This document shows positions 3,066 through 17,161 of a stretch of 64,000 bases of DNA, piece after piece. The position numbers and the translations under genes were made by a program. Each line of letters opens with the position of its first letter. The stretch's first letter is position 1. The DNA is taken from sequence record OQ722176.1; one strand, given 5' to 3'. The notes beneath the pieces were generated by a model, which was not told the origin of the DNA, did not search any database, and saw nothing but the letters and a program-made list of their open reading frames with translations.

Positions 3066-4502
3066 TTAAAAGCTGTAGCGATCAACGCATACAGTTTTCA
3101 GCATGATCTTGACCGGCTCAAGTTCACCACCCAACAATGAAGTCAAGATTGATGGACTACAACCTGAAACCAACGCTGTACCCGCTTCGCCTGACTTAAC
3201 AGGAACGTTACCGATACGACCACGAATGTTCCAGAACACTAGTTGAGGCATTTCATAGCCTGCACGTGCGTACATGCCTTTGATTGCTTCGAAATTAGTA
3301 ATTTCGCCGCGACCATACCAACCACCACCGCGATTTGCTTCGTCGAATTCCATGTCGCTCATGATAAGCAACTTAGTTGGCATTTCTTCTTGTGAAAGTT
3401 TTGCCTTCTTCGCACGTTCTAGTAGAACGCTGAAACACTTGGTGATGTTAGTGCTCATGTCTTCGCCAGAGCGATTCATGTTGTCAAGACGCTCTTTCAG
3501 TGAGCTACCGCGCAACTGGTGGAAGTGCGGATCACTTGAGAACGAAATGAACTGGTCTTTGAAGATGCCTTCGTTACGTTCAGCAACGTAGATGCCTAGA
3601 GACATTGCAACTTGCTTACAAGAAACGCTTGAACGATCAGTACCTGCGTTGATCGGCGTGCTCATAGAGCCAGACACGTCTACAACAGGGATGATGCGCT
3701 CATCAGAACCTTCCATGTAGTTCGGTAGAGCTTTCCATTGCTCATTCGCTACAGATGCGTTACCGTGACTAACGCTTTTAACAACATCGTATGGGAACAA
3801 TGCAGCAGCGTTGATCTTCGCTTCACCTTTTTGAAGTGATTCGATGTAGCTTGTGTAACGTGTCGAAGCGTTACGACCGAATGCTTGTTGATAACGAGCA
3901 GACGCTACAGAAGGCAACTTACCGAAGTCGATTGCATCCCATTCTTGAGCACACATCTTTTGTTCAACGGTGTCAGACAAAAGAGCAAGAATCTTACGCC
4001 ACTGCTTCGCAGTCACACCAAGAGACTTGATTGTGCGCTTGAACACATGACCGTTTTTGCTGTTTTCACGTGGGAACCACTTCGCAGCAAGACCGTTTTT
4101 GTCATTGACAATTGCGTTTGACCACATAGTGATCGCGTCTTTTTCAAGTTTAGTACCGAATGCAACAATCAAGTCATCGAAACGACCTAATTCTGGTACT
4201 TTTGACATTACAGCACGAGCAACGTCTGGCTGTTCATTACAAAGTTTAGCGAACAAAGTACGGAAAGTACCACGTTCACCCGCGCCACCGCGAACGTCAC
4301 GAGACCATAGCAAGATGCGAGTCGCTAGTTCTGGGTTTTCTGCAAACGCACGACCGAACAGAGTTTTAGACTGATCGTTGCCACGCATAGCAGCAATACC
4401 GAAGAACAAGTTTAGACACTCGTTACCTGAAGTGCTGTGAGTAAGTGCACCGTTTGCTGTACGTGAATCGTTTGATTGCATAGCGTTCATAAATGCTGAC
4501 AT
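3066..4502 (-). CDS. DUF2828-like helical + vWA protein (Ro60/TROVE-like architecture)
   Basis: RDVRGGAGER and AAKWFPRE motifs, C-terminal vWA with MIDAS DVSGSM...T...SDMEFD; start moved to ATG 4502 after GAGGA SD. Confidence 0.75.
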   Translation of the reverse strand: MSAFMNAMQSNDSRTANGALTHSTSGNECLNLFFGIAAMRGNDQSKTLFGRAFAENPELATRILLWSRDVRGGAGERGTFRTLFAKLCNEQPDVARAVMSKVPELGRFDDLIVAFGTKLEKDAITMWSNAIVNDKNGLAAKWFPRENSKNGHVFKRTIKSLGVTAKQWRKILALLSDTVEQKMCAQEWDAIDFGKLPSVASARYQQAFGRNASTRYTSYIESLQKGEAKINAAALFPYDVVKSVSHGNASVANEQWKALPNYMEGSDERIIPVVDVSGSMSTPINAGTDRSSVSCKQVAMSLGIYVAERNEGIFKDQFISFSSDPHFHQLRGSSLKERLDNMNRSGEDMSTNITKCFSVLLERAKKAKLSQEEMPTKLLIMSDMEFDEANRGGGWYGRGEITNFEAIKGMYARAGYEMPQLVFWNIRGRIGNVPVKSGEAGTALVSGCSPSILTSLLGGELEPVKIMLKTVCVDRYSF

Positions 4503-4538
4503 TGTTGATTTCCTCATATTAAATTGCTGTATAATGTC
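4498..4538 (-). promoter_or_regulatory. Leader hairpin with UACAGCAA motif, occluding SD/AUG of the vWA gene
   Basis: GACAUU-A-UACAGCAA-UUUAAUAUGAGGAAAUCAAC-AAUGUC; the 3' stem strand contains the AUG. Confidence 0.65.
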
Positions 4539-4552
4539 GTTTTGATGTGATG

Positions 4553-4590
4553 ATTATACACGGATTTTAACCCGTGTAAACACTTTTTTG
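4553..4590 (-). promoter_or_regulatory. T4-type early (sigma70) promoter
   Basis: A-tract, GTTTAC-17-TATAAT. Confidence 0.75.
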
Positions 4591-4593
4591 AAT

Positions 4594-4911
4594 TTATTTG
4601 TAATTGTGATGTCGAGTCAAGTTAGTACCATTCTCGTAAATCTCAACAAGTACGCTGCCGCCTGTTTCGTATGATGTCCGAAGTGAACGATAACCATGCT
4701 CTTCGAAGAATGAACGGATGATAGTCGCACCACGCTTGTCTTTGTCGGCTGCGTGAATCTTCACCTTGATCTTAATCGGAAAGTTAGATTCTGATTCGAC
4801 AGCGTGCATAAACTCTTTTTCACATTCTTTGGTGTAATGCTCGGATAGAGTACGTTTTAGTTCAGCTTCGCGCTCTTGAATTTGAACGCGCAATTCATTG
4901 TGGTTAATCAT
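4594..4911 (-). CDS. Hypothetical protein (105 aa)
   Basis: ORF track; overlaps next ORF by 4 nt. Confidence 0.7.
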   Translation of the reverse strand: MINHNELRVQIQEREAELKRTLSEHYTKECEKEFMHAVESESNFPIKIKVKIHAADKDKRGATIIRSFFEEHGYRSLRTSYETGGSVLVEIYENGTNLTRHHNYK

Positions 4912-5246
4912 GACTGAAACCCCGCTTTTGTGTTTTCTCGAATTGTGATTTTCACATACGAGTATGAGTAGTCGCGCATATCACGCGGATCGCCATTGTA
5001 ATGACCAAATTGCGAGTCGAAGTTATGAAACCCTTCTTTCTTCAGAACTTCGCGTATTAGAGTCATCATTTCATCACAGCATTCATTGCGTTGCAATTGA
5101 ACTTGAATGCTAATAGGGAAAGAAAATCCCTGAACGCCGCCAATTTTTCGTTCTATTGCTTTACGCAGTTCAACAACAAACATTTCTTCGCGAGTTGAAC
5201 GATTCTGTGCGACTTTACTAACTAATGTATCGTATAACTTGGTCAT
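4908..5246 (-). CDS. Hypothetical protein (112 aa)
   Basis: ORF track; coupled overlaps at both ends. Confidence 0.7.
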   Translation of the reverse strand: MTKLYDTLVSKVAQNRSTREEMFVVELRKAIERKIGGVQGFSFPISIQVQLQRNECCDEMMTLIREVLKKEGFHNFDSQFGHYNGDPRDMRDYSYSYVKITIRENTKAGFQS

Positions 5247-5611
5247 ACATAATCCTTAATCGAATTGTCAAAGTGGCGAATACATGAACTGTCAAGGCGC
5301 AAGCGACCATCACCATCATTATCAGGCAATGTATAGTTATCGTTAAACGGTTGACCGCATTCTTTCGCAATCTCGTATGCGTCTGCACGATTGAAATATT
5401 CACCGCAGTAGTTAATAAATCCCTGACCGCGATCACCTAGTTCATATCGGTGCTCAATAGTACCACCAAGTTCTTTGATGACCTTGAATACTGATTGCAT
5501 GTTACGACCGAAGTGACAGCTATCGGCAACAACGACTTCACGCACTTCTCCATTAGGTAGCGTTACGCGAATTGCATTTGCAGCAGAAGAGATCACATTT
5601 ACGTGCGACAT
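5243..5611 (-). CDS. Hypothetical phage protein (122 aa)
   Basis: ORF track; operon context. Confidence 0.7.
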   Translation of the reverse strand: MSHVNVISSAANAIRVTLPNGEVREVVVADSCHFGRNMQSVFKVIKELGGTIEHRYELGDRGQGFINYCGEYFNRADAYEIAKECGQPFNDNYTLPDNDGDGRLRLDSSCIRHFDNSIKDYV

Positions 5612-5961
5612 GTATCATACCTCATGAAAATCGAACCAACCTGCTTGTACTTCTGCGTTTGATTTAGCATCATACACATTTTAAATCGAGCAGATGGGTT
5701 GTTGGTGACTATAACAACAGTCTTAGGGAAATTGCTATGGTCGATTGCATGTGAGAGAATGTCATACCCCTCACGACCTACGACATCACCTAAGTCATTA
5801 TCCATGAATAGCGTAATGTCGGTTAAATTAGTGTGCTTGACGAATGTCATGCCTTCTTCAAATGTGCGCAACGTCATCTTTTCATCATCACGAACAGTTT
5901 CATTCGTGAAGTTGTTAATGTCGCGCTCATCATCAATCATAATGTACATAATAATTCTCAT
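5599..5961 (-). CDS. Stand-alone receiver-like protein, cyclic-phosphate-processing REC (cREC) type
   Basis: IDDER...MDNDLGD...GYD...TNNP pattern. Confidence 0.55.
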   Translation of the reverse strand: MRIIMYIMIDDERDINNFTNETVRDDEKMTLRTFEEGMTFVKHTNLTDITLFMDNDLGDVVGREGYDILSHAIDHSNFPKTVVIVTNNPSARFKMCMMLNQTQKYKQVGSIFMRYDTCRT

Positions 5962-6011
5962 TAGTTCGGACTGATAAATACAGAATACAGGATTATCAAG
6001 TGGAAGTCAAC

Positions 6012-6383
6012 ATGTTAGACGAAAAAATTATTTCTTTTGATGAATATCTAAATGAAGGGTGGTTTGAAAGGCAATGGGCGAGATATAAAGCAGGCGAAGA
6101 CACTCGCAGTATCAAGCGACTTGCTAAAATGCATACCAAGCTTCTGCACATTGAACAGAAAGCCAAGCAAAACAAGTACCGTTATGAAGTCGTGAGATAC
6201 AATTTCGAGCACATCAAAATGAATGTTCTCGACGCGAAACGCTTGATTCACAAGCTGCGTTATAAGAAAGGTATCAGCGAAGAGCTAGTTCAGGCAATGG
6301 ATAAACTAGATCTAGAGCTTGATAGACTCAACGACTTTGCCGTTGAAGGTCTGCATGATCTAATGATCAGACAGAAGTTATAA
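6012..6383 (+). CDS. Basic protein with capsid-targeting-like N-terminus (putative internal head protein)
   Basis: ISFDEYLNE then K/R-rich; ATAAATA late-promoter-like motif at ~5974; ATG 6012. Confidence 0.6.
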   Translation: MLDEKIISFDEYLNEGWFERQWARYKAGEDTRSIKRLAKMHTKLLHIEQKAKQNKYRYEVVRYNFEHIKMNVLDAKRLIHKLRYKKGISEELVQAMDKLDLELDRLNDFAVEGLHDLMIRQKL

Positions 6384-6386
6384 AAG

Positions 6387-6411
6387 AAAAGCCCCATTTA
6401 GGGGCTTTTTT
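6387..6411. terminator. Bidirectional intrinsic terminator
   Basis: AAAAGCCCC-ATTTA-GGGGCTTTTTT between convergent ORFs. Confidence 0.8.
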
Positions 6412-6412
6412 G

Positions 6413-6625
6413 TTAGTGTGAATGGCGTAACTTGTGTTCGATCATTCGATCTACAATCGTGGAGTACATAAGATGCTCTTTGTAATATTTCTCATCAACT
6501 CGGGTGCATTGAAATTGTCGAAAATCTTTGCGCAGACGTGCAATAAATTTATTAAGTGCTTTGCGTACTTTGCAAACTTCAGATAGTTCCATGCTTTTTA
6601 GTGTGGCTTCAGAAAGAATTTCCAT
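6413..6625 (-). CDS. Hypothetical protein (70 aa)
   Basis: ORF track; GAGGTG SD. Confidence 0.6.
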   Translation of the reverse strand: MEILSEATLKSMELSEVCKVRKALNKFIARLRKDFRQFQCTRVDEKYYKEHLMYSTIVDRMIEHKLRHSH

Positions 6626-6654
6626 GATTGTTCACCTCTTAGTTAATAGAATAC

Positions 6655-6699
6655 GGGAGACACGGGAATCGAACCCATTGCCTTGACCACATATCTCCC
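6655..6699 (-). ncRNA. tRNA minihelix-like element (acceptor stem + T arm only)
   Basis: GGGAGAU/GUCUCCC stem, 14-nt linker, AUGGG-UUCGAUU-CCCGU T arm. Confidence 0.5.
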
Positions 6700-6724
6700 A
6701 CCGAGAAGTTACGCCAATCTGAGG

Positions 6725-6952
6725 TTAGTGTGCTAGACTCATCAAACGGCGCATACGTTCGCGTTCTGTCAGTTCATCTAAATTTTCCGTCTTCACCTCT
6801 TTGATCTCTTCTTTCGGTTCTTCAACTGCTTCGTCTTTTTTACGAGCGTCGGGACCGATGTTTTTCCAAAGCGGACTATTGCGCCAGTTATCGTTAAAAC
6901 CGTTGCCTAGACCACGACCTTCGCGTGCGTGCGATTTACTGTGAATGCTCAT
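6725..6952 (-). CDS. Hypothetical protein (75 aa)
   Basis: ORF track; TAATG overlap with upstream ORF. Confidence 0.65.
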   Translation of the reverse strand: MSIHSKSHAREGRGLGNGFNDNWRNSPLWKNIGPDARKKDEAVEEPKEEIKEVKTENLDELTERERMRRLMSLAH

Positions 6953-7155
6953 TATTCGTTAGATTTCTTTGTTACTTGTCTTACTACACCAGCCGCTGCT
7001 ACAGCACCTGCAACTTTAGCGCCTGTCTTTGCTGCTTTACCAGCTTTCTTTGCCCCAGACTTTACACGGTCTTTAATGGAACGTTTTTTCTTCTTGTCTT
7101 CAGGACGAGATTCTTCTAATTCTGACATGAATTTGTCAAAGGTTTTATCACTCAT
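6952..7155 (-). CDS. Small Lys/Ala-rich basic protein, putative internal head protein
   Basis: KTFDKFMSELEE then KKKKR...KKAGKAAK; TAAATA core upstream (7186-7191). Confidence 0.6.
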   Translation of the reverse strand: MSDKTFDKFMSELEESRPEDKKKKRSIKDRVKSGAKKAGKAAKTGAKVAGAVAAAGVVRQVTKKSNE

Positions 7156-7188
7156 GACCTATCTCCAATTGTTTGAGTTCAACTGTAT

Positions 7189-7566
7189 TTAGAATAGCCT
7201 AGAGTAAGTTATTGCCAATCCGATTTCTTTATTGAATGCGCATTGTTCATTCCCGTATAGAACATCGTCTAAACTGAATCTCTTACGTCTACCACTCATG
7301 TTCATATAACGCCCTAGAGCGTCTTGTGAGACGAATTCAAGTCTTTCGCACATAGTATGCGGGTCATCAGTTTGAGAATGGTCTACGACGGTTCTGTAAA
7401 GAAATAGACCCCGTATGATGAATGCTGTCAGCTTATTGTTAATCTTGACGCTGTTATTGTTCAAATGCTCGTATTGGCTCATTTGAAAGAATATATCAGC
7501 ATCAGGCATTCTAGCTATACGTTTCATCTTATAAATTGAAACTCGTTTTGTATTACTAACCAACAT
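7189..7566 (-). CDS. Hypothetical protein (125 aa)
   Basis: ORF track; GGAGA SD. Confidence 0.65.
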   Translation of the reverse strand: MLVSNTKRVSIYKMKRIARMPDADIFFQMSQYEHLNNNSVKINNKLTAFIIRGLFLYRTVVDHSQTDDPHTMCERLEFVSQDALGRYMNMSGRRKRFSLDDVLYGNEQCAFNKEIGLAITYSRLF

Positions 7567-7618
7567 GTGTTCTCCCGTTGTTTATTCTCAGATTACACGA
7601 TTTGTTAAACGCCATAAA

Positions 7619-7643
7619 CAAAAAAACCTGCTCAAGGCAGGTT
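7619..7643 (-). terminator. Terminator at the 3' end of the tRNA/ncRNA cluster
   Basis: AACCTGC/GCAGGTT hairpin + T tract. Confidence 0.75.
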
Positions 7644-7659
7644 CTAATGTGCAATTAAC

Positions 7660-7907
7660 AGACATTCGAGAAGTGTTTTTTTCGTCTTTCCTCAAATCTC
7701 AATTGACTATCTCGATGTTTCTCACCGAGAAAATACTCATGATTCAGCATGAGACCTATTTCGTTTGACAGTACGAACACCGTCTTAATGGTCATTTCCT
7801 ACCACGAGAATGCGACAGGCTCACGTCATAACTGAGAAAGCAGCTAGTGCGCCTCATTACTATTAAAGTTTGCTTCTTTGATTAGTAATAGTTGCTGTAC
7901 AATGTCT
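7660..7907 (-). ncRNA. ~250-nt structured RNA, copy A (UACAGCAA family)
   Basis: Closed by AGACAUU/AAUGUCU; shares covarying hairpins and blocks with 10333-10544. Confidence 0.65.
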
Positions 7908-7918
7908 TATTGCGAATT

Positions 7919-8007
7919 TGGCGGAGATACTGGGAATCGAACCCAGAGAACGCTATTAACGTCCGACACCTTAGCAGGGTGCTGTCATACCTTTAGACCA
8001 TATCTCC
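7919..8007 (-). tRNA. trnS: tRNA-Ser(GCT)
   Basis: Cloverleaf, long variable arm, CCA. Confidence 0.9.
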
Positions 8008-8012
8008 AGTTA

Positions 8013-8189
8013 TTACTTACCGCGCTCTGCTTTGCTAATTTCAACAGCCGCGATTTGTGCGTTTGCTTCTTTCTCAGTATCATGTGTACCAAGTACACGA
8101 CCTTTAGATGAAAGAGCAACCCACTTGTCACCACGCTTCTCAACTTTCTCAGTCAAGTCGTGATATTCATCAAACGTTTTTAATTTCAT
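8013..8189 (-). CDS. 58-aa protein, putative internal head protein
   Basis: Manual translation MKLKTFDEYHDLTEKVEKRGDKWVALSSKGRVLGTHDTEKEANAQIAAVEISKAERGK; below ORF-track cutoff; TATAAATA upstream. Confidence 0.7.
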   Translation of the reverse strand: MKLKTFDEYHDLTEKVEKRGDKWVALSSKGRVLGTHDTEKEANAQIAAVEISKAERGK

Positions 8190-8214
8190 GTCTCATCCCT
8201 CAGTTAGTTTATAT

Positions 8215-8222
8215 TATTTATA
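8215..8222 (-). promoter_or_regulatory. T4-type late promoter
   Basis: TATAAATA. Confidence 0.7.
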
Positions 8223-8224
8223 AC

Positions 8225-8442
8225 TGAGCGACTTTTAATCGGTGGCATGCTGCTCTCATGCTCAGACACATATTTGCTCTTATTGCCAGCGTGTGCCACG
8301 CGCTTCGCAGATCCCATTTGATAATTTAACGACCCACGGGACTCTTAGCAGGTCTTACACATAGCCTTTCAGCTATATCTTCTTTTAAGACCATAGTGTC
8401 GTACGGTCTAATCACTCTCTTTCGATTCGCGTTGCTAAGTGA
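8225..8442 (-). ncRNA. Candidate structured RNA (element X)
   Basis: Non-coding, several hairpins (AGACCGUA/UAUGGUCU; AUAGC-UGAAAG-GCUAU). Confidence 0.35.
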
Positions 8443-8445
8443 ATT

Positions 8446-8522
8446 TGGTGCCCAACCCGAGATTCGAACTCGGATCATCTAGTGTTTGAAACTAGCGCCT
8501 CTGCCAATTGGACTAGTTGGGC
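8446..8522 (-). tRNA. trnL: tRNA-Leu(CAA), short variable arm
   Basis: Cloverleaf, 77 nt, CCA. Confidence 0.85.
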
Positions 8523-8528
8523 GAAATA

Positions 8529-8605
8529 TGGTACGCATGGGCGGATTCGAACCGCCATCCCTGAGAATTTAAACCTCATGCCTCTGCCTATTGGACCACA
8601 TGCGC
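8529..8605 (-). tRNA. trnL: tRNA-Leu(TAA), short variable arm
   Basis: Cloverleaf, 77 nt, CCA. Confidence 0.85.
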
Positions 8606-8609
8606 ATTA

Positions 8610-8805
8610 TTGTGTCGTTATGTCGATGTTGGCGACACTGCTAGGCTGCCGAGTTATCAACTCATTATACTAGCTACGGGCTTCTTACGCACTAATCACT
8701 ACTCGCAAGTAGCAACTTAAACATGCTCAGTTCCGAGCGATTAACCTCTTAGACCGTAGTCTTGAACCATAACCGACCCCTTTGCACATCCAACTTGTGC
8801 ATCGT
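8610..8805 (-). ncRNA. Candidate structured RNA (element Y)
   Basis: Non-coding, several hairpins, short blocks shared with element X. Confidence 0.3.
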
Positions 8806-8807
8806 CT

Positions 8808-9032
8808 TTAATACTGATCTTGCAAACCGCACTTAGTGCATGTTGCAGTAATTAATTCAAATCCGCTATTATCAGCAACCATTTCATGTTCACAATCAAG
8901 CTGCTTTCTCAATTCATGCAAGTGAGCTTTTTGCTCATGCAATTTCACAGAAGTTCTTCGAATGCTATCTTCAGTCAAGCGAATTGAAAATTTAACAGAT
9001 CTGTCTAAGTATTCTTTAACTTCTGGTTTCAT
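8808..9032 (-). CDS. Hypothetical protein with C-terminal CEH...CTKCG
   Basis: ORF track. Confidence 0.6.
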   Translation of the reverse strand: MKPEVKEYLDRSVKFSIRLTEDSIRRTSVKLHEQKAHLHELRKQLDCEHEMVADNSGFELITATCTKCGLQDQY

Positions 9033-9050
9033 GATATAGTTCTCAAAATT

Positions 9051-9124
9051 TGGAGCTCGAACAGGGAATCGAACCCTGACCTGCGGATTTGCAATCCGTC
9101 ATACTGCCATTATACGATTCGAGC
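9051..9124 (-). tRNA. trnC: tRNA-Cys(GCA)
   Basis: Cloverleaf, U73, CCA. Confidence 0.9.
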
Positions 9125-9227
9125 AAATTGTTAGTGCATTGCATGAGCTACTGGCGATCTTAATGGGTATTTCAAGCATTCAGAATTCCCATGCGCTACT
9201 ACAATGCTTTTTTCGCTAAATGCACTT

Positions 9228-9719: not shown

Positions 9720-9725
9720 AAAATT

Positions 9726-10832: not shown

Positions 10833-10842
10833 ATAATTTATT

Positions 10843-11052: not shown

Positions 11053-11077
11053 GTTGTTCTCACAGTTGTTTAGAAAA

Positions 11078-11151
11078 TGGTGCCCCCACGAGGAGTCGAA
11101 CCCCGAATACATGATTACAAGTCAAGTGTTATACCATTTAACTATGGAGGC
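11078..11151 (-). tRNA. trnT: tRNA-Thr(TGT)
   Basis: Cloverleaf, CCA. Confidence 0.85.
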
Positions 11152-11157
11152 GATACT

Positions 11158-11270
11158 GAGTGTCGTTACTTGCGTCGTCCGGACTAGAGATACCAACTCT
11201 AAACGGGAGTCGAACCCGAAACATTTCTTTTCATAGAAGAATATTAGTAAATTGTTTGCTGAAAACACTC
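11158..11270 (-). ncRNA. Circularly permuted tRNA-like RNA with UUCAGCAA motif (Y-RNA-like)
   Basis: GAGUGU/ACACUC closing stem; motif; anticodon arm UUCUU-CUAUGAA-AAGAA; T arm CGGG-UUCGACU-CCCG; loop-closed UAGAG/CUCUA stem. Confidence 0.65.
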
Positions 11271-11279
11271 TTCGGTATT

Positions 11280-11353
11280 TGGCTGGGAAATAGAGATTCG
11301 AACTCTAACTGGCGGAGTCAAAATCCGCAGTGCTGCCATTACACCATATCCCA
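11280..11353 (-). tRNA. trnQ: tRNA-Gln(TTG)
   Basis: Cloverleaf, U1-A72, CCA. Confidence 0.9.
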
Positions 11354-11372
11354 ATTATTCTTAAATTATCTT

Positions 11373-11448
11373 TGGCGGAACCGACGGGTTTCGAACCCGC
11401 TACCTTCTCCGTGACAGGGAGACATGCAACCTTTTACACCTCGGCTCC
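11373..11448 (-). tRNA. trnD: tRNA-Asp(GTC)
   Basis: Cloverleaf, G73, CCA. Confidence 0.9.
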
Positions 11449-11517
11449 CCAAAGACAACTTAAATTAGTTGCTTTGTTTTTTCAAGTTCACACTTAACGG
11501 TAGTGACTCTCCGAATT

Positions 11518-11593
11518 TGGCGCTTCATGTTGGACTCGAACCAACGACTCTCTGATTAACAGTCAGACACTCTACCAACTGAGTTAATGAAGC
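11518..11593 (-). tRNA. trnN: tRNA-Asn(GTT)
   Basis: Cloverleaf, G73, CCA. Confidence 0.9.
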
Positions 11594-11594
11594 G

Positions 11595-11669
11595 TGGCGG
11601 GCGTGGAGAATTTCGAAATCTCGACTTGTCGGTTAACAGCCGACTACTCTGCCTCTGAGTTACACACCC
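11595..11669 (-). tRNA. trnN: tRNA-Asn(GTT), second copy
   Basis: Cloverleaf, G73, CCA. Confidence 0.85.
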
Positions 11670-11680
11670 TTGAATAAAAC

Positions 11681-11738
11681 AGTAATCCTTTTTGCTTTTT
11701 CCAAATAAAAGTTTTGTATTGTTTGCTGTAAGATTACT
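11681..11738 (-). ncRNA. Minimal 58-nt UACAGCAA-family RNA
   Basis: AGUAAUCU/GGAUUACU stem, UACAGCAA, CUUUU-AUUUGGA-AAAAG hairpin. Confidence 0.55.
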
Positions 11739-11743
11739 TAAAC

Positions 11744-11817
11744 TGGCAGGGGCATAGAGATTCGAACTCTAACGAACGGGTTTGGAATCCGTCATGCTGC
11801 CTTTACATCATGCCCCT
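11744..11817 (-). tRNA. trnW: tRNA-Trp(CCA)
   Basis: Cloverleaf, G73, CCA. Confidence 0.9.
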
Positions 11818-11864
11818 ATCGCGAATGAGGTGGCTTGAATCAGTGGTCATCCTCACGCTAAATT

Positions 11865-11938
11865 TGGTAGTCCCTAAGAGAATCGAACTCTTACCGTGCG
11901 ATTATCGGTCGCAAGCTCTACCGTTGAGCTAAGGGACT
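11865..11938 (-). tRNA. trnI: tRNA-Ile(GAT) with C33
   Basis: Cloverleaf; loop CC-GAU-AA. Confidence 0.8.
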
Positions 11939-12001
11939 AAAGTGTGCGCATTTCAGCGCACTGTTAATCGGTTAAGTGACTAAACTTCCCGGTTAACTAA
12001 T

Positions 12002-12100
12002 TGGCGGAAGACTAGGGATTCGAACCCTAACAAGCATTCCCATGCTCCGACGGTTTTCAAGACCGTTGCCGCTACCCCGAATCTTTCGGCTAAGCCTTCC
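12002..12100 (-). tRNA. trnS: tRNA-Ser(TGA), enlarged D loop
   Basis: 99 nt, long variable arm, G73, CCA. Confidence 0.85.
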
Positions 12101-12106
12101 ATTGTT

Positions 12107-12181
12107 TGGAAGCGAGTGCCAGAATTGAACTGACCTAAACTAGCTTATGAGACTAGTGAGTTCCCAGTACTCTTACTCGCA
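12107..12181 (-). tRNA. Atypical CAT-anticodon tRNA
   Basis: U1:U72 mismatch, U73, CCA. Confidence 0.7.
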
Positions 12182-12182
12182 A

Positions 12183-12368
12183 TTATTTCGTAAATTGAAT
12201 CAGACAAGAATCTGATTGATAGATGAAAGTCCCTTCTGCCTTTTCGTCAACCTTGACGATGCATCCGTTTGTATCTTTATCAGCACGAGTCGAAATATCC
12301 GTTACTGAAATGCCTGAACTACAAGCTGACAAACTTACTGCTAATACAAGTGCAAATAATGCTTTCAT
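12183..12368 (-). CDS. Small lipoprotein (61 aa)
   Basis: Signal peptide with LSAC lipobox. Confidence 0.7.
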   Translation of the reverse strand: MKALFALVLAVSLSACSSGISVTDISTRADKDTNGCIVKVDEKAEGTFIYQSDSCLIQFTK

Positions 12369-12482
12369 ATTACCTTCTCTTAAAAATTACAGCTTGCGTT
12401 CTTTGGTCTGTTTATCGCTGTCTGGGCTATACCCGCCGAGCGATCAATAGAGTAAGTTAAATTGCAGTATGCAAGCTAAAAT

Positions 12483-12568
12483 TGGTGGATCGCCTAGGAT
12501 TCGAACCTAGAATTCCCTCACGGGACACGGGGTTACAGCCCGCCGGCTTACCGTTAGCCTAACGATCC
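12483..12568 (-). tRNA. trnY: tRNA-Tyr(GTA)
   Basis: Cloverleaf, long variable arm, CCA. Confidence 0.9.
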
Positions 12569-12925
12569 AATATCTAGTATACCAGCGTGTGCTTCTTTGT
12601 GACAATTTGAACAAAGCATCACACACTTATTTAATTCATTCTGAGCGTTTTTAAAACTAGTCATACGACCTTTGTTTATCTCAAAGTCTTTTTGAGAAGG
12701 GTCTTTATGATGAAACTCCAAAGCTGATATGCATCTATTGTATCCACAAGACTGACATTCGCCGCCCATGTACTCAACACACTTGACTTTAAAAGCTTCT
12801 CTAGCCTCATATACCTTAGCGTTGCAGCAAGTTTTACAACTCCCTTCAATCCCGCTTTTAGTATCGCTTCTTTTGTAATACTCAGTCAATGGCTTCATTG
12901 ACTTGCAAGTAGAACATTCTTTCAT
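12554..12925 (-). CDS. HNH endonuclease (free-standing, possibly homing)
   Basis: CxxC...ALEFHH...ELNKCVMLCSNCHKEAH; stop codon inside tRNA-Tyr gene. Confidence 0.85.
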   Translation of the reverse strand: MKECSTCKSMKPLTEYYKRSDTKSGIEGSCKTCCNAKVYEAREAFKVKCVEYMGGECQSCGYNRCISALEFHHKDPSQKDFEINKGRMTSFKNAQNELNKCVMLCSNCHKEAHAGILDIGSLG

Positions 12926-12990
12926 AACGTATCCTTTATTATCAAGTGCTGTATCTCTACAGCGAAAGGTGCTACGCTATCAAGTTAAAT

Positions 12991-13064
12991 TGGTACTCTG
13001 TACGGGAGTCGAACCCGTCTCTTGTCATTGAAAGTGACATGACCTACCGATAGTCGAACAGAGC
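12991..13064 (-). tRNA. trnE: tRNA-Glu(TTC)
   Basis: Cloverleaf, CCA. Confidence 0.85.
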
Positions 13065-13127
13065 ATTAATTGTATATTGATTTGCAAGCTAATTAACTCG
13101 CAAAGCGATACACAATGTATCTAAATT

Positions 13128-13204
13128 TGGTACGCCGCCCTGGACTCGAACCAGACACCTGAGAGTTAAAAGCTCCCTGCTCTTCCATGATGAGCTACCG
13201 ACGC
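13128..13204 (-). tRNA. trnK: tRNA-Lys(TTT)
   Basis: Cloverleaf, CCA. Confidence 0.9.
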
Positions 13205-13215
13205 ATTATAAAATC

Positions 13216-13290
13216 TGGTGGGTCGCATGAGATTCGAACTCACACCGATCTGGTTAAAAGCCAGATGTACTACCGTTATACGAACGACCC
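13216..13290 (-). tRNA. trnK: tRNA-Lys(TTT), second copy
   Basis: Cloverleaf, CCA. Confidence 0.9.
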
Positions 13291-13296
13291 AGAATC

Positions 13297-13371
13297 TGGT
13301 GCACCCTCTCGGAATCGAACCGAGCACTGCGGGACTTCAATCCGCCGCTTTTCCTGATAAGCTAAGGGTGC
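13297..13371 (-). tRNA. trnF: tRNA-Phe(GAA)
   Basis: Cloverleaf, CCA. Confidence 0.85.
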
Positions 13372-13423
13372 AATGTGCGAAGATTTATGTTTTAAGTCAG
13401 CTATCGCATACAGACTACATGTT

Positions 13424-13500
13424 TGGTACGCATGAAGAGAGTCGAACTCTTAACTTCTGGCTTCTAAGACCAGTGCCTCTGCCAATTGGGCTACATGCGC
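13424..13500 (-). tRNA. trnL: tRNA-Leu(TAG), short variable arm
   Basis: Cloverleaf, 77 nt, CCA. Confidence 0.85.
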
Positions 13501-13532
13501 ATTATTCGTTTTGCGTTATTTCGTTCTTCTTC

Positions 13533-13654
13533 ATTGTACATGATGTTTTCATCGTTGTAAACATCTTTTTTGAAAAACTTTTCATTCAGTTTTGAATGTT
13601 AATTCGCTTTTCTTTATTGTACATGATGTTTTCATCGTTGTAAACATCTTTTTT
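13533..13654 (-). promoter_or_regulatory. Tandem identical 39-bp early promoters (13533-13571, 13616-13654)
   Basis: Each copy: A-tract, TTTACA-17-TACAAT. Confidence 0.8.
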
Positions 13655-13696
13655 AAATTATTTTGAAGAACTTAACGTTTTCATTTCTATGTGTTA

Positions 13697-13725
13697 ATCT
13701 TAACACTAGATCAAGACATCTTAAA
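13697..13725 (-). promoter_or_regulatory. Possible third early promoter
   Basis: A-tract, TTTAAG-17-TAAGAT. Confidence 0.45.
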
Positions 13726-13801
13726 CACTTTTTAGTGAAAAGTTTGCTAAATTCTATCGTCTCGACAGTACTTAGCAAGATACGGTCCTAAGCGTATCAA
13801 A

Positions 13802-13877
13802 TGGCACCCCGTGAGAGATTCGAACTCACAACCTTTGCCTTCGTAGGGCACTGCTCTTCCAATTGAGCTAACAGGGC
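13802..13877 (-). tRNA. trnR: tRNA-Arg(ACG)
   Basis: Cloverleaf, CCA. Confidence 0.9.
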
Positions 13878-13884
13878 ATTAAAT

Positions 13885-13958
13885 TGGTCGGATCGGAGAG
13901 ACTCGAACTCTCACCACATGCTCCCAAAGCACGCACGCTACCTTTACGCCACGATCCG
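13885..13958 (-). tRNA. trnP: tRNA-Pro(TGG)
   Basis: Cloverleaf, C1-G72, G37, CCA. Confidence 0.9.
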
Positions 13959-14044
13959 TTTGTTCTTTAACTTTGTTTATGATACTCTGCAATCAAAGTA
14001 CGATAAACAAAATTTTCAAATTATTTTCTTTTTCTTCAGATAAT

Positions 14045-14069
14045 AAAAAAAGGACGCTATTTGCGTCCT
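14045..14069 (-). terminator. Intrinsic terminator
   Basis: AGGACGC/GCGTCCT hairpin + T tract. Confidence 0.7.
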
Positions 14070-14340
14070 CAAGTATACTTCTATGTTATACTATCGGACT
14101 ACAAGAGGGAATCCCAGTTTTGTTTTGCACACGGATTCGCTAGATACACGAATTCTGAGCGCAGAAAATCGCTGCGTAATGTCTCAGATGAATGTGTAAT
14201 CGAATGTGTCATTGAATGCTCTCTTGCAAAAAATAAAAATTGTTTTTGTTTGTATAATAGTACTTATAACACCAATTTTGACGATTTGCGGTATTTTCGC
14301 AGAAAATTGAAAAAAATTTCAACTTTCTGCGATCTTTCTA

Positions 14341-14574
14341 TCAGCCTAGGTGTTTTCGCTTATTCATTTCAACTAGAATTTCATCGTTGTAATGCTTGTT
14401 AAGCTGTACAAACTTCTTGTGCTGATCTTCAGTCAACTCATTCGTGTCATTCAGATGCTTCAAGAAGCCAAGAGGTTTACGAAACGATTTGCGATATTCA
14501 TTAAGACGCTCGTCTGACAGACCGCGCAGTTGTTTCGGAGTAAGCAATGTTTTATTGATATTGAAATTACTCAT
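14341..14574 (-). CDS. Hypothetical protein (77 aa)
   Basis: ATG 14574 after GTGAGG SD. Confidence 0.65.
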   Translation of the reverse strand: MSNFNINKTLLTPKQLRGLSDERLNEYRKSFRKPLGFLKHLNDTNELTEDQHKKFVQLNKHYNDEILVEMNKRKHLG

Positions 14575-14599
14575 GTTGTACCTCACTATGTTTTGAAAA

Positions 14600-14715
14600 T
14601 GGCAGTCGGGGCTGGATTCGAACCAGCGACCACGTGCTTAACAGGCAATTGAAAGAGTGCTGGAGCGATACTTGACAGTATCATTCTTCGTGCTCTACCA
14701 CTGAGCTACCCGACT
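14600..14715 (-). ncRNA. tRNA-Asn-like RNA with ~40-nt insertion (UCCAGCAC motif)
   Basis: Intact acceptor (G73, CCA), D and T arms; inserted hairpin + motif before GC-CUGUUAA-GC loop. Confidence 0.75.
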
Positions 14716-14720
14716 GTAAA

Positions 14721-15245
14721 TTATTTAACTTTGAACTTCAAATTTCGCCATTCAAAGTTGCGTTTGTTCTTTTCTTTGTAGAACGTATCCCAATCAATTG
14801 AAATCGGACAAGTCTGACTACCCACACGAGCGATAAACACGTCGTGAGTGTTGCTGTATCGCTCTCTAAGCTCTTTTACGCGCTTATCGTAGTTAGCGAT
14901 ATAGTCTGAACAAGCTTTATTGTACGCTGCTTTAGAGAAGCGTTTAGAAGCTTGAAAGTCATACCCAAGATACGGACGAATTACTCGAACACGTTCAGTC
15001 GACCATCCCATGTTGAAACTGTTCTCAATCTCACCCATGATCTTACCCGTCTTTTTACAACGAGCTAGGATAACCCAACAACGCTCACGTCGAAAATCTT
15101 TGCGTGTGTACACGTTGACATACTTTTCAATATAGTCATTGTACTTGTTGTTGTATATCGAGCGAAGTCTCGAACGTTCTTCAGGTGACATTGCGGCACG
15201 CTCTTCTTTTGAGAACGCTTGAGCAAATTTCAACGGAACATTCAT
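14721..15245 (-). CDS. Hypothetical protein (174 aa)
   Basis: ORF track; 4-nt overlap with upstream ORF. Confidence 0.7.
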   Translation of the reverse strand: MNVPLKFAQAFSKEERAAMSPEERSRLRSIYNNKYNDYIEKYVNVYTRKDFRRERCWVILARCKKTGKIMGEIENSFNMGWSTERVRVIRPYLGYDFQASKRFSKAAYNKACSDYIANYDKRVKELRERYSNTHDVFIARVGSQTCPISIDWDTFYKEKNKRNFEWRNLKFKVK

Positions 15246-15451
15246 ATCATACCTCTCTTACGCTTCAACTGACTGCGTTCGATTTGACTGAACATTTGCC
15301 TATCACGCGATTTGCTTCTACGAGAATTACCCCATCGAAACCCAGCACAAACACCATGTTGACCTTGCTTCAGCTTTTTGGCAAGCCAATGCGGAATATC
15401 TTCACCTTTGCGCTGATAGCGTTTAGCAATATCAGTATACGTTTTACCCAT
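15242..15451 (-). CDS. Small basic hypothetical protein (69 aa)
   Basis: ORF track; GGAGA SD. Confidence 0.6.
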   Translation of the reverse strand: MGKTYTDIAKRYQRKGEDIPHWLAKKLKQGQHGVCAGFRWGNSRRSKSRDRQMFSQIERSQLKRKRGMI

Positions 15452-15466
15452 AATATTCTCCGTGGA

Positions 15467-15514
15467 CGGGTGGGAGAATCGAACTCCCTACTGGCGCAAC
15501 ACATCGTCAACCCG
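15467..15514 (-). ncRNA. Second tRNA minihelix-like element
   Basis: CGGGU/ACCCG stem + GGGAG-UUCGAUU-CUCCC T arm, no D or anticodon arm. Confidence 0.45.
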
Positions 15515-15704
15515 ATAAGAGTTTCGAAGTAAGAGCCTATCAGCATATCAAATTCATTGTCTTTATTTCAACACATGAGAGTTCGACCTCTCACATGTTT
15601 TTTCTCGACAAGTCCGAGTGATTCAGCACCGTCGTAGATAGCGAGTCTGCGACTATACTAATGTTCGGCATACACTGCACACAGAGCACCTAGCCCCGCC
15701 ATAA

Positions 15705-15944
15705 TTATTTGCCGTAATGAAGTTTAGCCCACGCTGTATGTTCAGCTTTGATTTCATCTTCAGTACGAGTATCAATGACATCTTCAAAAGTCTCGTTTTC
15801 AAAACGAACAGTGATGTTTTCAAAACCCTTACGAGAAGCGTATTTCAATGCTTCTTCGCGAGTATCACCGTAACCAAACTGTTCGATGATTTTACCAGAA
15901 CGGCTCTCAAAAGTAACAGTTGCTTTGATTTTAGTGTCAGTCAT
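15705..15944 (-). CDS. Hypothetical protein (79 aa)
   Basis: Start moved to MTDTK, downstream of the promoter. Confidence 0.6.
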   Translation of the reverse strand: MTDTKIKATVTFESRSGKIIEQFGYGDTREEALKYASRKGFENITVRFENETFEDVIDTRTEDEIKAEHTAWAKLHYGK

Positions 15945-15978
15945 AATGTTCTCTTCTATGTTTCGTTTCGATGTAAGT

Positions 15979-16007
15979 ATTATCGGCTTACACGAAAACA
16001 AAGTCAA
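15979..16007 (-). promoter_or_regulatory. Early promoter
   Basis: A-tract, TTGACT-17-GATAAT. Confidence 0.6.
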
Positions 16008-16029
16008 GAACTTTTTTCATTATTTTAAC

Positions 16030-16107
16030 TGGTGACCCGCGTGGGACTCGAACCCAACTATCTTTCGGTTATGAGCCGACTGCTTTTACCAGTTAAGCTA
16101 ACGGGCC
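16030..16107 (-). tRNA. tRNA with CAT anticodon (Met or Ile2)
   Basis: Cloverleaf, CCA. Confidence 0.85.
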
Positions 16108-16108
16108 A

Positions 16109-16477
16109 TTATCTCTCAAGAAATCGACCTACTTTGGCAGCAAAGATGTTTGCTTCTTCTGCTATAAGCGCAGATGTCTTCACTTGATGAAACATGTCTT
16201 GTTGGTGTAGAAAATCAAGTTTATCTGCACAGAGCAACAATTCTTTAATCGTCCGTCTAATCTCTAGGCAATCAAGCTGACTAGTGTCAGGGTGATAGTT
16301 GAGATTATCTAACACAGGCAGTACTTGTTGATAGCAACCCATGCCGATGAAGTTTATCATAAGTCGATACTGCATTTCAACAGCGAATGAGCAATATTTT
16401 CTAAGATTGCGCTTTACAATCTCACAACGATGCAAAATACAATCTAGCTCGTCGTTTATGTCATCAAACTTATTCAT
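16109..16477 (-). CDS. Hypothetical protein (122 aa)
   Basis: ORF track; GAGG SD. Confidence 0.65.
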   Translation of the reverse strand: MNKFDDINDELDCILHRCEIVKRNLRKYCSFAVEMQYRLMINFIGMGCYQQVLPVLDNLNYHPDTSQLDCLEIRRTIKELLLCADKLDFLHQQDMFHQVKTSALIAEEANIFAAKVGRFLER

Positions 16478-16490
16478 AAAACCTCGAAAG

Positions 16491-16611
16491 TGGTGGAGAG
16501 TGGTGGATTTGAACCACCGACAAAAAGATTTACCTAGTTAGGGTTTGCAGCATGAATGCTTATCAGAATTCTTTAACATTCTTTTGCTCTACCAGACTGA
16601 GCTAACTCTCC
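16491..16611 (-). ncRNA. tRNA-shaped RNA with ~45-nt insertion (UGCUGCAA motif)
   Basis: Acceptor+CCA, D and T arms intact; AAAAGA/UCUUUU stem encloses GAUA-loop hairpin + motif. Confidence 0.75.
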
Positions 16612-16625
16612 GTTGTAAAAACATA

Positions 16626-16751
16626 TTGATGCGGGTGCAGGATTCGAACCTGCGTCACGATCTTATGAATGATATGCGAATTGATTGCCGTACAGATTCT
16701 TATCAGAATCAGTTTTTTTGCTACGTGTGCTAACCACTACACCAACCCGCA
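16626..16751 (-). ncRNA. tRNA-shaped RNA with insertion (UACGGCAA motif), no encoded CCA
   Basis: D and T arms intact; acceptor helix extends to 19 bp. Confidence 0.7.
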
Positions 16752-17023
16752 TCAATATGTTTTCGAGTTCTTGCGCAGACCTAACGGTAATTCCCTACGC
16801 AAGAACCAGTAATCCTTGTTTTATATTGCCTTAGCTAATCACAACACAACCCAATATCGTGCGCTTTAATTACGGGATTAATGACCCGTTCGCATGTGAT
16901 TAGCGTAAAAGTATGATTACGCACCTTTTCTTCTTCAATGTCCAAGGCAAATAGAACTATGAATACTAGTGCGAGAAGATAGACAATCAAATTGCTCACC
17001 TCGCTTTGTTAGTGAGAGGACAT

Positions 17024-17146
17024 TGGTCGAGTGTAACAGAATCGAACTGTTCCCACGATCTCCCTATGATATGCGTAAATTGGTTGCTGAATATAATCAT
17101 GTCTGATTACAGTATGCTACGTGTGCTGCCACTACACCAACACTCG
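17024..17146 (-). ncRNA. tRNA-shaped RNA with insertion (UUCAGCAA motif)
   Basis: Paralogue of 16626-16751; A73-CCA; AUC-AUAGGGA-GAU anticodon-like loop. Confidence 0.75.
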
Positions 17147-17161
17147 ACCAATGTACTCTCG

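Follow-up and report, generated by a model that had tools for sequence, protein, structure and literature searches.

The DNA described here, 64,000 nucleotides (nt) of sequence record OQ722176.1 and called the window at that full length, raises the question of whether a short RNA motif that recurs in the tRNA region of a phage is the ligand of a Ro60-like protein encoded on the same strand. The source is Vibrio phage vB_VspM_VS2, a KVP40-like phage, to which bases 3000-9000 of the window are 100% identical; these bases share 82-98% identity with phages of the KVP40 type, genus Schizotequatrovirus. There are 27 tRNA genes within 7919-16107, every one on the minus strand, and the gene at 3066-4502 is a homolog of KVP40.0300, which carries the RefSeq name 'RNA-binding protein'. 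A first-pass annotation had proposed that nine minus-strand elements, the leader of this gene and eight non-coding RNAs, share one helix and one octamer. All nine proved real at the positions given, and the 3' helix partners of the open ones, for which only 5' strands had been named, were all located; the count itself fell one short, as the element at 12391-12477 had been missed. The ten elements that carry this module, all on the minus strand, are the leader, RNAs 2-6 and RNAs A-D (Table 1). We consider it likely that the module acts as a tag and that the tag is the ligand of the protein encoded at 3066-4502, a member of the DUF2828 family.

Searched against Pfam, the protein matches only DUF2828 (1e-28) and DUF7788 (4e-46); a search of NCBIfam gave no match, and the phrog_850 profile 'RNA-binding protein' covers the full length, residues 1-478, at 4.5e-171. 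The metal-ion-dependent adhesion site (MIDAS) motif DxSxS is D275-V-S277-G-S279, and D275, S277, S279, T351 and D383 are invariant in an alignment of 26 homologs of 53-81% identity (A1). This alignment also served as input to an AlphaFold2 model (predicted local distance difference test, pLDDT, 78; predicted template modelling score, pTM, 0.75). Compared with the PDB by Foldseek, the model has as its top four matches 9l5y_A, 1yvr, 2i91_B and 9l5y_B, all of them Ro60 (E 1.6e-6 to 6.6e-6, probability 1.00, template modelling (TM) score 0.53-0.58, 506-571 aligned columns); 9l5y is the Ro60 of Thermus phage phiLo, and 1yvr and 2i91 are Xenopus Ro, with and without RNA. Full-length matches are to Ro60 only; everything else, at E > 0.03, is a vWA domain by itself. 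Searching the PDB by sequence yielded only designed armadillo repeats and was set aside, the fold comparison alone being informative; a profile search of PDB sequences reached a TROVE protein at E 1.3 only. The description of the protein as TROVE-like in the first-pass annotation is thus borne out by the fold and not by a sequence match. The model suggests a divergent Ro60-type protein of helical repeats followed by a vWA/MIDAS domain, which may bind RNA.

The family is large, with >7800 homologous clusters in a protein search and 711 phage records. DUF2828 proteins occur in FelixO1-type, Campylobacter, Listeria, Staphylococcus, Enterococcus and Aeromonas phages, in jumbo phages and in cluster-L mycobacteriophages, whose records call the protein 'Ro-like RNA binding protein'; Pfam also records DUF2828 in eukaryotes. 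Identity to the window protein is 81% for Vibrio phage D480, 76% for phage 1.081.O, 45% for FelixO1, 34% for Listeria phage P100 and 32% for LeBron.

The tag consists of a helix of 7-8 base pairs (bp) with conserved outer pairs (AGRAU...AUYCU, with an A before the 5' strand and a G after the 3' strand), followed on the 5' strand by a single-stranded UNCNGCAA. Its consensus is a-AGRAUnn(n)-UNCNGCAA...nnAUYCU-G, and the octamer core C-N-GCAA is constant. The window contains the exact octamer TACAGCAA 10 times, where 2.6 copies are expected; 0 of 100 shuffles reach this count, and all copies but one are on the minus strand. Those at 4454-4461 and 14851-14858 fall within coding sequence and are not modules; the former encodes the conserved residues T15-A-N17. 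A looser octamer, T.C.GCA[AC], has 103 matches in the window with no strand or regional bias and no enrichment, so the octamer alone is uninformative and the signal lies in octamer plus helix. An occurrence of TACAGCAC at 12946-12953 was left uncounted because it has no closing helix. We built a covariance model of helix and octamer (R1) from 26 diverse relatives, and its matches in the window are on the minus strand only; they include RNA 5 (58.9 bits, E 9e-12), 12388-12480 (E 0.024), the leader (E 0.05) and the 5' part of RNA 4. Weak R1 matches at 13537-13570 and 13620-13653 were rejected as copies of a tandem promoter-like repeat, aaaaagatgTTTACAacgatgaaaacatcatgTACAAT (13533-13644, minus strand), whose two near-identical copies, 83 nt apart, sit in the tRNA cluster between tRNA-Arg(ACG) and tRNA-Leu(UAG). 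A search for long-range helices that allowed G-U pairs was likewise abandoned, as it returned at least 7 bp at 73% of motif sites and at 50% of random sites; with the background this high, short-span and alignment-based tests were used instead.

The alignments bear out the earlier observation that the helix varies with its pairing kept while the octamer stays constant. Among 26 open hairpins from unrelated contigs (A3), 89% of helix cells are paired, and sliding the partner strand leaves 47% or less; the pairing percentage partly reflects the choice of members for a helix, as the diversity of pair types does not. Double changes occur at 7 of the 8 pairs, and one G-C pair is invariant. In 15 closed hairpins gathered without selection for the octamer (A4), 96% of cells are paired and double changes occur at 6 of 7 pairs. 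The octamer-side strand of these is AGRAUNN and its partner NNAUYCU plus an invariant G, matching the open form, and the GAYA loop of the closed form bridges this G and the A found just before the 5' strand in open hairpins. Closed and open forms are thus exact circular permutations of each other, and the word 'permuted' of the first-pass annotation applies in its strict sense. The two topologies, open where the RNA ends form the helix (RNAs 2-6) and closed where the helix is capped by GAYA (RNAs A-D), would present a single three-dimensional design. In KVP40, D480 and 1.081.O the octamer stands at homologous non-coding positions beside helices with compensated changes, for example GUAAUC.GAUUA, CUUACU.AGUAAG and CAAGCU.AGCUUG; the last two are found in the D480 and 1.081.O homologs of RNA D, a paralog of C, with the octamer unchanged.

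One tag is carried by four body types: hairpins with an A-rich loop, long RNAs, the YrlA-like RNA 4 and the tRNA-shaped RNAs A-D. The first-pass idea of a family of tRNA mimics holds for five of the ten elements (RNA 4 and A-D) and fails for RNAs 5 and 6, which are simple hairpins, and for RNAs 2 and 3, which are 212-248 nt long and not tRNA-like either. RNA 2 begins 11 nt past the CCA of tRNA-Ser(GCU), has UACAGCAA as its octamer and contains a 3' hairpin with AAAGACGAAAAAAC in the loop; in its homologs in KVP40, L005, D480 and 1.081.O, both the terminal helix and the 3' hairpin contain covarying pairs. RNA 3, its paralog, again has UACAGCAA after the helix, which differs by a compensated change of U-A to A-U. 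Its octamer and the bases that follow (ACAGCAACAAAU, 10524-10536) are complementary to an internal AUUUGCUUGUUGU (10395-10412), so that free RNA 3 could mask its tag. RNA 5 is the minimal hairpin, a 42-nt A-rich loop that opens with UACAGCAA, located between tRNA-Trp and tRNA-Asn; its homologs covary (AGCAAUCU/GGAUUGCU in KVP40, AGAAUGU/GCAUUCU in 1.081.O). RNA 6 begins 5 nt past the CCA of tRNA-Tyr, is kept in KVP40 and has an 8-bp closing helix in its minimum-energy fold. Such folds form the closing helices of the leader and of RNAs 3, 5 and 6, and the module hairpins of A, C and D. Spacers between the open RNAs and the flanking tRNAs are 5-11 nt, from which we infer that these RNAs are probably released by RNase P and tRNA 3'-end processing.

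RNA 4, flanked by tRNA-Gln and tRNA-Thr (spacers 9 and 6 nt), has the topology of YrlA, a T arm (11204-11218, GGGUUCGACUCCC) followed by a D-like arm (11186-11200, AGAG-uugguau-CUCU). Across its KVP40, D480 and 1.081.O homologs the T arm shows the compensatory change GGG/CCC to GCGAG/CUCGC, and the D-like arm goes from AGAG/CUCU through UGAG/CUCA to GUGC/GCAC. RNAs A-D lack the 5-bp anticodon stem and 7-nt loop and have about 45-50 nt with the module instead. Standard ARAGORN makes no call on them; its intron mode draws acceptor, D and T arms for all four, three of which (A, B and D) encode CCA. With the Rfam tRNA model, RNA A reaches 48.4 bits, with a long insertion, and RNA B 55.8 bits. The KVP40 homologs of A-D carry pseudo-tRNA annotations. 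In RNA A, whose KVP40 homolog is annotated tRNA-Pseudo-3, the acceptor stem with CCA, the D arm and the T arm are intact and the closed module takes the place of the anticodon arm; in RNA B, which has homologs in KVP40, D480, 1.081.O and L055, the module sits within an anticodon-like stem, AAAGA/UCUUU. The YrlA-like and the tRNA-shaped types are two circular permutations of one arrangement, an L-shaped tRNA body with the tag at its anticodon end. No family of Rfam 15 fits the module RNAs of the window, FelixO1, P100, LeBron or the metagenomic relatives that were searched. Matches of hairpins of the RNA 5 type to the 'Dicty Class I RNA' family were discarded as chance resemblance, and a YrlA match at 16557-16675 (30 bits) as an artefact that fuses the neighbours C and B, with the T arm taken from the former and the D arm from the latter.

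Table 1. Module-bearing elements, the Ro60-like gene and its signals in the window
Feature	Position	Strand	Details
Ro60-like gene	3066-4502	-	478 amino acids; DUF2828 N-terminal helical-repeat domain, DUF7788 C-terminal vWA domain
Leader module	4498-4538	-	GACAUU-A-UACAGCAA-uuuauauGAGGaaaucaac-AAUGUC (loop also written uuuaauauGAGGaaaucaac); GACAUU 4538-4533, octamer 4531-4524, 3' strand AAUGUC 4503-4498
RNA 2	7660-7907	-	248 nt; AGACAUU 7907-7901, octamer 7899-7892, AAUGUCU 7666-7660
RNA 3	10333-10544	-	212 nt; AGACAAUA 10544-10537, octamer 10536-10529, UAUUGUCU 10340-10333
RNA 4	11158-11270	-	113 nt; GAGUGU 11270-11265, UUCAGCAA 11263-11256, ACACUC 11163-11158
RNA 5	11681-11738	-	58-nt hairpin; AGUAAUCU 11738-11731, octamer 11730-11723, GGAUUACU 11688-11681
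RNA 6	12391-12477	-	AGCUUGC-a-UACUGCAA...GCAAGCU; octamer variant UACUGCAA
RNA A	14603-14715	-	octamer 14664-14657; closed module GAUACU-GUCA-AGUAUC-gc-UCCAGCAC
RNA B	16494-16611	-	octamer 16552-16545; closed module GAAUUCU-GAUA-AGCAUUC-a-UGCUGCAA
RNA C	16627-16750	-	octamer 16692-16685; closed module GAUUCU-GAUA-AGAAUC-ug-UACGGCAA
RNA D	17025-17149	-	octamer 17091-17084; closed module (UG)UAAUCA-GACA-UGAUUA(UA)-UUCAGCAA
Sigma-70-type early promoter of the Ro60-like gene	4553-4580	-	TTTACA-16-TATAAT, 11/12 positions
Intrinsic-terminator-like hairpin just past the stop codon of the Ro60-like gene	3036-3059	-	
Intrinsic terminator after RNA 2	7623-7645	-	

The linkage of module and gene was followed through four reference phage loci (L001-L004), 80 viral contigs, 80 contigs from genome collections (bacterial and archaeal, mostly metagenome-assembled genomes, of many phyla) and the loci of P100 and LeBron, with 165 gene loci counted. 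In the 80 viral contigs, retrieved via the protein, the gene strand has 106 copies of TACAGCAA and the opposite strand 18. Matches to R1 at E<=0.1 fall on the gene strand, mostly <500 nt from the gene, in 85 of 86 cases in the reference loci and viral contigs; in the genome-collection contigs all 31 of 31 do so, nearly all of them <500 nt from the gene. The pattern NNCNGCAA closed by a helix of 7 bp or more, sought from -700 to +900 nt of the gene, is present on the gene strand at 121 of the 165 loci versus 37 of 165 on the opposite strand, and most loci without an R1 match have octamer variants next to the gene, such as UUCUGCAA or (C)UGCAGCAA. No other neighbour from the window (DUF458, cREC or the small open reading frames) is kept beside the gene across the 165 loci, and the syntenic tRNA region of T4, rnaC and rnaD included, served as a negative control and contains no module.

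The arrangement of the RNAs around the gene differs between lineages. A large metagenomic clade (L006-L021) has the gene stop, about 35 nt, a hairpin RNA, a long RNA of 180-290 nt and a terminator. In FelixO1, which belongs to another phage family, the gene lies immediately upstream of the tRNA cluster, and four modules of the form AGAAGACC[AG][AU][AU]-UACAGCAA...[U/A][U/C]GGUCU are found within 710 nt downstream of it among the first tRNA genes of the cluster; the fourth, F4, has a T arm and then a D arm. P100 has three tandem modules immediately upstream of the gene (AACAGCAA twice, CACAGCAA once). The GC-rich LeBron has modules with GACAGCAA, AGCAGCAA and AACAGCAA immediately downstream, followed by a terminator and with no tRNA genes nearby; the middle one (7544-7652) is tRNA-like and gives the top YrlA match, sub-threshold at 39.8 bits (E 1e-5). 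Relatives that keep the gene, namely KVP40, D480, 1.081.O, FelixO1, P100 and LeBron, thus have the motif as well. The fold and the motif in relatives were the two points on which computation could have overturned the first-pass proposal; both were checked, and neither did.

The reverse search, from motif to gene, started with a scan of viral contigs for AAGAAUNNNUUCAGCAA, whose 119 matches are mostly chance occurrences in coding sequence. The genuine RNAs found in this way (L090, L091, L131, L151, L173 and L176) are all in tRNA clusters, on the tRNA strand; L173 holds the gene, and L090 and L151 are truncated loci. In the lineage of L091, L131 and L204 two good hairpins (L131 10309-10366 and 11337-11400; L204 3611-3668 and 4466-4529) again stand in a tRNA cluster. 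An Acb1-like gene and an ECF-type (extracytoplasmic function) sigma factor lie near the module hairpins of L131 and L204.

The leader copy places the Shine-Dalgarno sequence (4512-4515) in its loop and the AUG (4500-4502) in its 3' strand. The promoter upstream of it is the top sigma-70-like match within 2400-18400 and would start the transcript a few bases before the module; the gene looks monocistronic because a terminator-like hairpin follows its stop immediately. The leader module is kept in KVP40, in L005 and, with AACAGCAA, in 1.081.O, and in L024, L030, L036, L041, L029 and L071 a module hairpin or a complete YrlA-like RNA ends no more than about 5 nt from the Shine-Dalgarno sequence. 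Judged by position in the sequence, the leader copy is a candidate autoregulatory operator, a proposal to which we give roughly an even chance, and the leader arrangement fits co-transcription of an upstream RNA gene equally as well as operator mimicry. In D480 (L002) a homing-endonuclease gene (15368-15997) stands in place of the leader and promoter of the Ro-like gene, and TACAGCAA there overlaps the start codon (TACAGCAATG).

The explanation that we favour, and regard as probable as a whole, is that a divergent Ro60-type protein binds a family of RNAs through a portable tag and may shut off its own synthesis through the leader copy. Ro60 proteins take Y RNA on the outer surface and the ends of misfolded RNA in a central cavity. 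By analogy with Ro60 and Y RNAs, the protein would load the tagged RNAs, and the variable bodies (tRNA shape, A-rich loop or long domain) would recruit or block other factors; to judge from Rsr, YrlA and polynucleotide phosphorylase (PNPase) and from the Ro60 of phiLo, these factors might be host RNA or tRNA enzymes, and a nuclease might be tethered. The leader would mimic the minimal hairpin RNA over the ribosome-binding site and AUG, so that surplus protein would stop its own translation. A role in counter-defence is plausible because gp130 of phage Bas63, of the same family, counters the Ppl defence system and because genes for Acb1 and cREC flank the cluster. A bolder version, in which the tag is a portable and permutable label able to load any RNA body on a second, non-TROVE Ro lineage and tRNA-shaped or other decoys disarm host enzymes or defences that target RNA or tRNA, we offer tentatively, as possible and on present evidence rather doubtful.

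Several observations weigh against the favoured explanation. The structural match to Ro60 is moderate, with a TM score of about 0.56 and a root mean square deviation of 7-8 Å, and TROVE was not matched at sequence level in searches of Pfam, NCBIfam and PDB sequences. The leader helix is a weak version of the tag, with 6 bp and neither the outer A-U pair nor the 3' G, and scores weakly with R1 (E 0.05); FelixO1 has no leader copy. The octamer of RNA 3 can pair internally in the minimum-energy fold, and RNAs of the window lie as far as 12.6 kb from the gene. As the loci were retrieved via the gene, the link from gene to RNA is far better tested than that from RNA to gene, and the lineage of L091, L131 and L204 has neither a DUF2828 nor a TROVE gene within about 10 kb on each side of its RNAs. 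Co-occurrence, which the first-pass annotation had suggested testing with a covariance model, was found on the gene side, in the strand counts above, and not in this lineage. The contig of this lineage is 52 kb long, so the gene may lie elsewhere; the lineage is nevertheless the single observation that could still turn against the binding of the tag by the DUF2828 protein.

The same lineage, with RNAs and no nearby DUF2828 gene, would be expected if the module were instead a processing, stability or recruitment signal for a host factor (an RNase, PNPase or an RNA chaperone) or for another phage protein, and travelled with the gene merely by sharing the tRNA-cluster region. Such a signal would agree with the setting of the RNAs in the window, in FelixO1, P100, L037 and L042 and in the matches of the reverse search, where they stand within tRNA clusters and 5-11 nt separate them from the ends of tRNAs. 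In LeBron and the L006-L021 clade, however, the RNAs abut the gene in a gene-RNA-RNA-terminator unit with no tRNA genes, and the leader of the gene itself carries a copy in several lineages. No other window neighbour is kept by the gene (DUF458 at 4 of 165 loci), the module persists across phages whose hosts, Proteobacteria, Firmicutes and Actinobacteria, have different factors, and T4 shares the synteny of the tRNA region yet lacks the module. We therefore consider a host-factor signal improbable, without dismissing it.

Two further explanations fare worse. RNAs A-D could be tRNAs with introns, in which hairpin and octamer form the recognition element of a phage splicing system and nearby RNA-end enzymes cut and ligate. 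RNA B does allow a reading as tRNA-Asn(GUU) in which 44 nt are inserted after position 37 and their removal leaves a perfect 7-nt loop, AUGUUAA; its 1.081.O homolog is annotated as a 121-nt tRNA-Asn in a record that has no other tRNA-Asn, and the cREC gene and an RNase H-like gene are close by. The intron mode of ARAGORN, on the other hand, places the introns at non-canonical and varied sites (32/33 to 34/35) with the anticodons SeC, Met, Tyr and Ala, and the intron reading of A-D was rejected on these inconsistencies. Position 33 is a C in the D480 homolog of B, no anticodon stem-loop can be restored in A, C or D, the module also occurs in non-tRNA RNAs, in an mRNA leader and in the open topology, and the 57B-like '2H ligase' by the cluster is Acb1 and so not a splicing ligase; splicing is in our view very unlikely. 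Still less credible is an action of the octamer in DNA, as promoter element, recombination or homing site or relic of tRNA-spacer duplication, with the helices incidental. Its reverse complement, TTGCTGTA, resembles the core of the T4 MotA box, and the tRNA cluster contains homing-endonuclease-like reading frames and duplicated segments. Against this, the module shows a strict bias towards the gene strand, the octamer is kept where flanking phage sequence cannot be aligned, and the helices vary yet stay paired, in orthologs and in unrelated phages, which is expected of selection at the RNA level only and practically refutes a DNA element.

The neighbourhood of the gene and cluster holds further features. 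The gene order gene 1, 57A, 57B and tRNAs is common to the window and the T4 tRNA region. The 57B homolog at the upstream edge of the cluster (17814-18269, minus strand), labelled 'RNA ligase' in the KVP40 and T4 records, matches Pfam Acb1, an anti-CBASS phosphodiesterase, at 4e-46, so that the cluster of tRNAs and module RNAs is flanked by a counter-defence gene. On its upstream side the Ro-like gene has a gene for a protein of the cREC type (cyclic-phosphate processing receiver; 5599-5961, minus strand), and on its downstream side one for a DUF458 protein that is RNase H-like (2498-3046, minus strand); conservation of both beside the gene is restricted to phages of the KVP40 type. Within the cluster, a 123-amino acid open reading frame (12554-12925, minus strand) shows Cys pairs and an EFHH...N...CSNCH pattern typical of HNH homing endonucleases, overlaps with its 3' end the first 15 nt of tRNA-Tyr (12483-12568) and had no match in a Pfam search at E<=0.01. 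A tRNA-like sequence at 10762-10832 (minus strand) scores 46 bits with the Rfam tRNA model, receives no call from ARAGORN and carries no module; its KVP40 homolog is annotated tRNA-Pseudo-1. Among metagenomic phages with the gene, L037 has a transfer-messenger RNA at 8605-9054 (75 bits) and L042 a group I intron at 19404-19595 (58.6 bits), each within the tRNA cluster. In P100 (L208) a large ROOL-like RNA (4468-5019, plus strand), which scores 86 bits (E 3e-16) where the threshold is 99.1, is found some 1 kb upstream of the gene, with tRNA genes on one side and the three module RNAs on the other.

DUF2828/phrog_850 is among the larger uncharacterised phage protein families and occurs in phages used or considered for biocontrol and therapy, those of the FelixO1 and P100/A511 types and those of Staphylococcus, Enterococcus and Campylobacter. 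Knowledge of it has so far consisted of the Ro60 resemblance, the Ppl phenotype, guesses at partner RNAs and the labels of RefSeq, PHROGs and SEA-PHAGES. A defined tag, with its invariant core and covarying helix, gives the family a testable RNA partner, permits the annotation of hundreds of unrecognised non-coding RNAs and accounts for the long 'pseudo-tRNAs' that annotations of KVP40-type genomes have listed since 2003. It also provides a natural example of circular permutation of a putative protein-binding RNA element into two topologies. If the explanation is true, recognition of Y-like RNAs has evolved a second sequence code.

Among known systems, the stable species 1 and 2 RNAs of T4 (rnaC and rnaD), whose function is unknown, resemble the window RNAs in being small RNAs at the end of a syntenic tRNA cluster, and the 3' end of rnaC is T-arm-like; they differ in lacking the UNCNGCAA module, and T4 has, to our knowledge, no DUF2828 gene. 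Operator mimicry is familiar from the Escherichia coli thrS leader, which mimics tRNA-Thr, from ribosomal-protein operons and from RegA and gp32 of T4. As in thrS-type autoregulation, the leader described here puts a copy of the putative ligand over the ribosome-binding site of its own mRNA, where an operator role is suggested by the sequence; a difference is that the leader hairpin of other lineages does not enclose the Shine-Dalgarno sequence but stands immediately before it.

With the Rsr/YrlA-YrlB system of bacteria and mycobacteriophages (PMC4201824; RF02553) the window shares a helical-repeat and vWA protein that adjoins same-strand small RNAs, several per locus, whose ends pair and whose 5' strand carries a short conserved motif; a T arm before a D arm inside the terminal helix, as in YrlA, is found in window RNA 4, F4 of FelixO1, L029, L057, L071 and LeBron. 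Unlike Rsr, the window protein is DUF2828 and not TROVE in sequence, and its locus is found within or next to a phage tRNA cluster and not an rtcBA repair operon. Where YrlA has GNCGAAN0-1G near its 5' end (PMC4201824), every element described here has UNCNGCAA and the AGRAU/AUYCU helix, so the suspicion voiced in the first-pass annotation, that the specificity is distinct from the bacterial Y-RNA consensus, was well founded. Many window-type RNAs, moreover, are not tRNA-like, and the closed permuted form occupies the anticodon position. Relatives in LeBron and L037 score 34.8-39.8 bits with the Rfam YrlA model against a threshold of 69, low yet non-random, and F4 gave no match to it at E<=1. 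Lacking a TROVE match and the YrlA motif or threshold score, the system is not placed in the Rsr/YrlA families though it is Ro60/Y-RNA-like. The Ro60 of Thermus phage phiLo with Yrl1 and Yrl2 (PMC12135203) is likewise a phage-encoded Ro60 fold with phage-encoded RNAs, and its structure 9l5y is the best match to our model. That protein is a recognisable TROVE protein for which RNA binding and inhibition of PNPase were shown experimentally (PMC12135203), whereas the DUF2828 lineage is known here from sequence and model, and the tag is unreported for phiLo.

A full-text search for the octamer returned only primers, and we met no account in the literature of the tag or of its covariation, permuted form and leader copy. 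Closest in family are gp130 of Bas63 (Felixounavirus) and CKA15_055 of a Listeria phage, both DUF2828 proteins like that of the window. For gp130, which counters Ppl in the PhageMaP preprint, similarity to Ro60 and the neighbourhood of tRNA genes were noted and Y RNAs were guessed nearby (bioRxiv 10.1101/2024.10.10.617714). For CKA15_055, Ro60 likeness was reported with a guess that Y RNAs lie among the adjacent tRNA genes, and three extremely abundant putative non-coding transcripts were seen <=2 kb upstream of the gene (PMC12282133); these hyper-expressed loci may be three module RNAs of the P100 type or the adjacent ROOL-like RNA. Neither report names the RNAs or a motif common to them, and neither describes the tag, the covariation of its helix, its permuted version or the copy in the leader.

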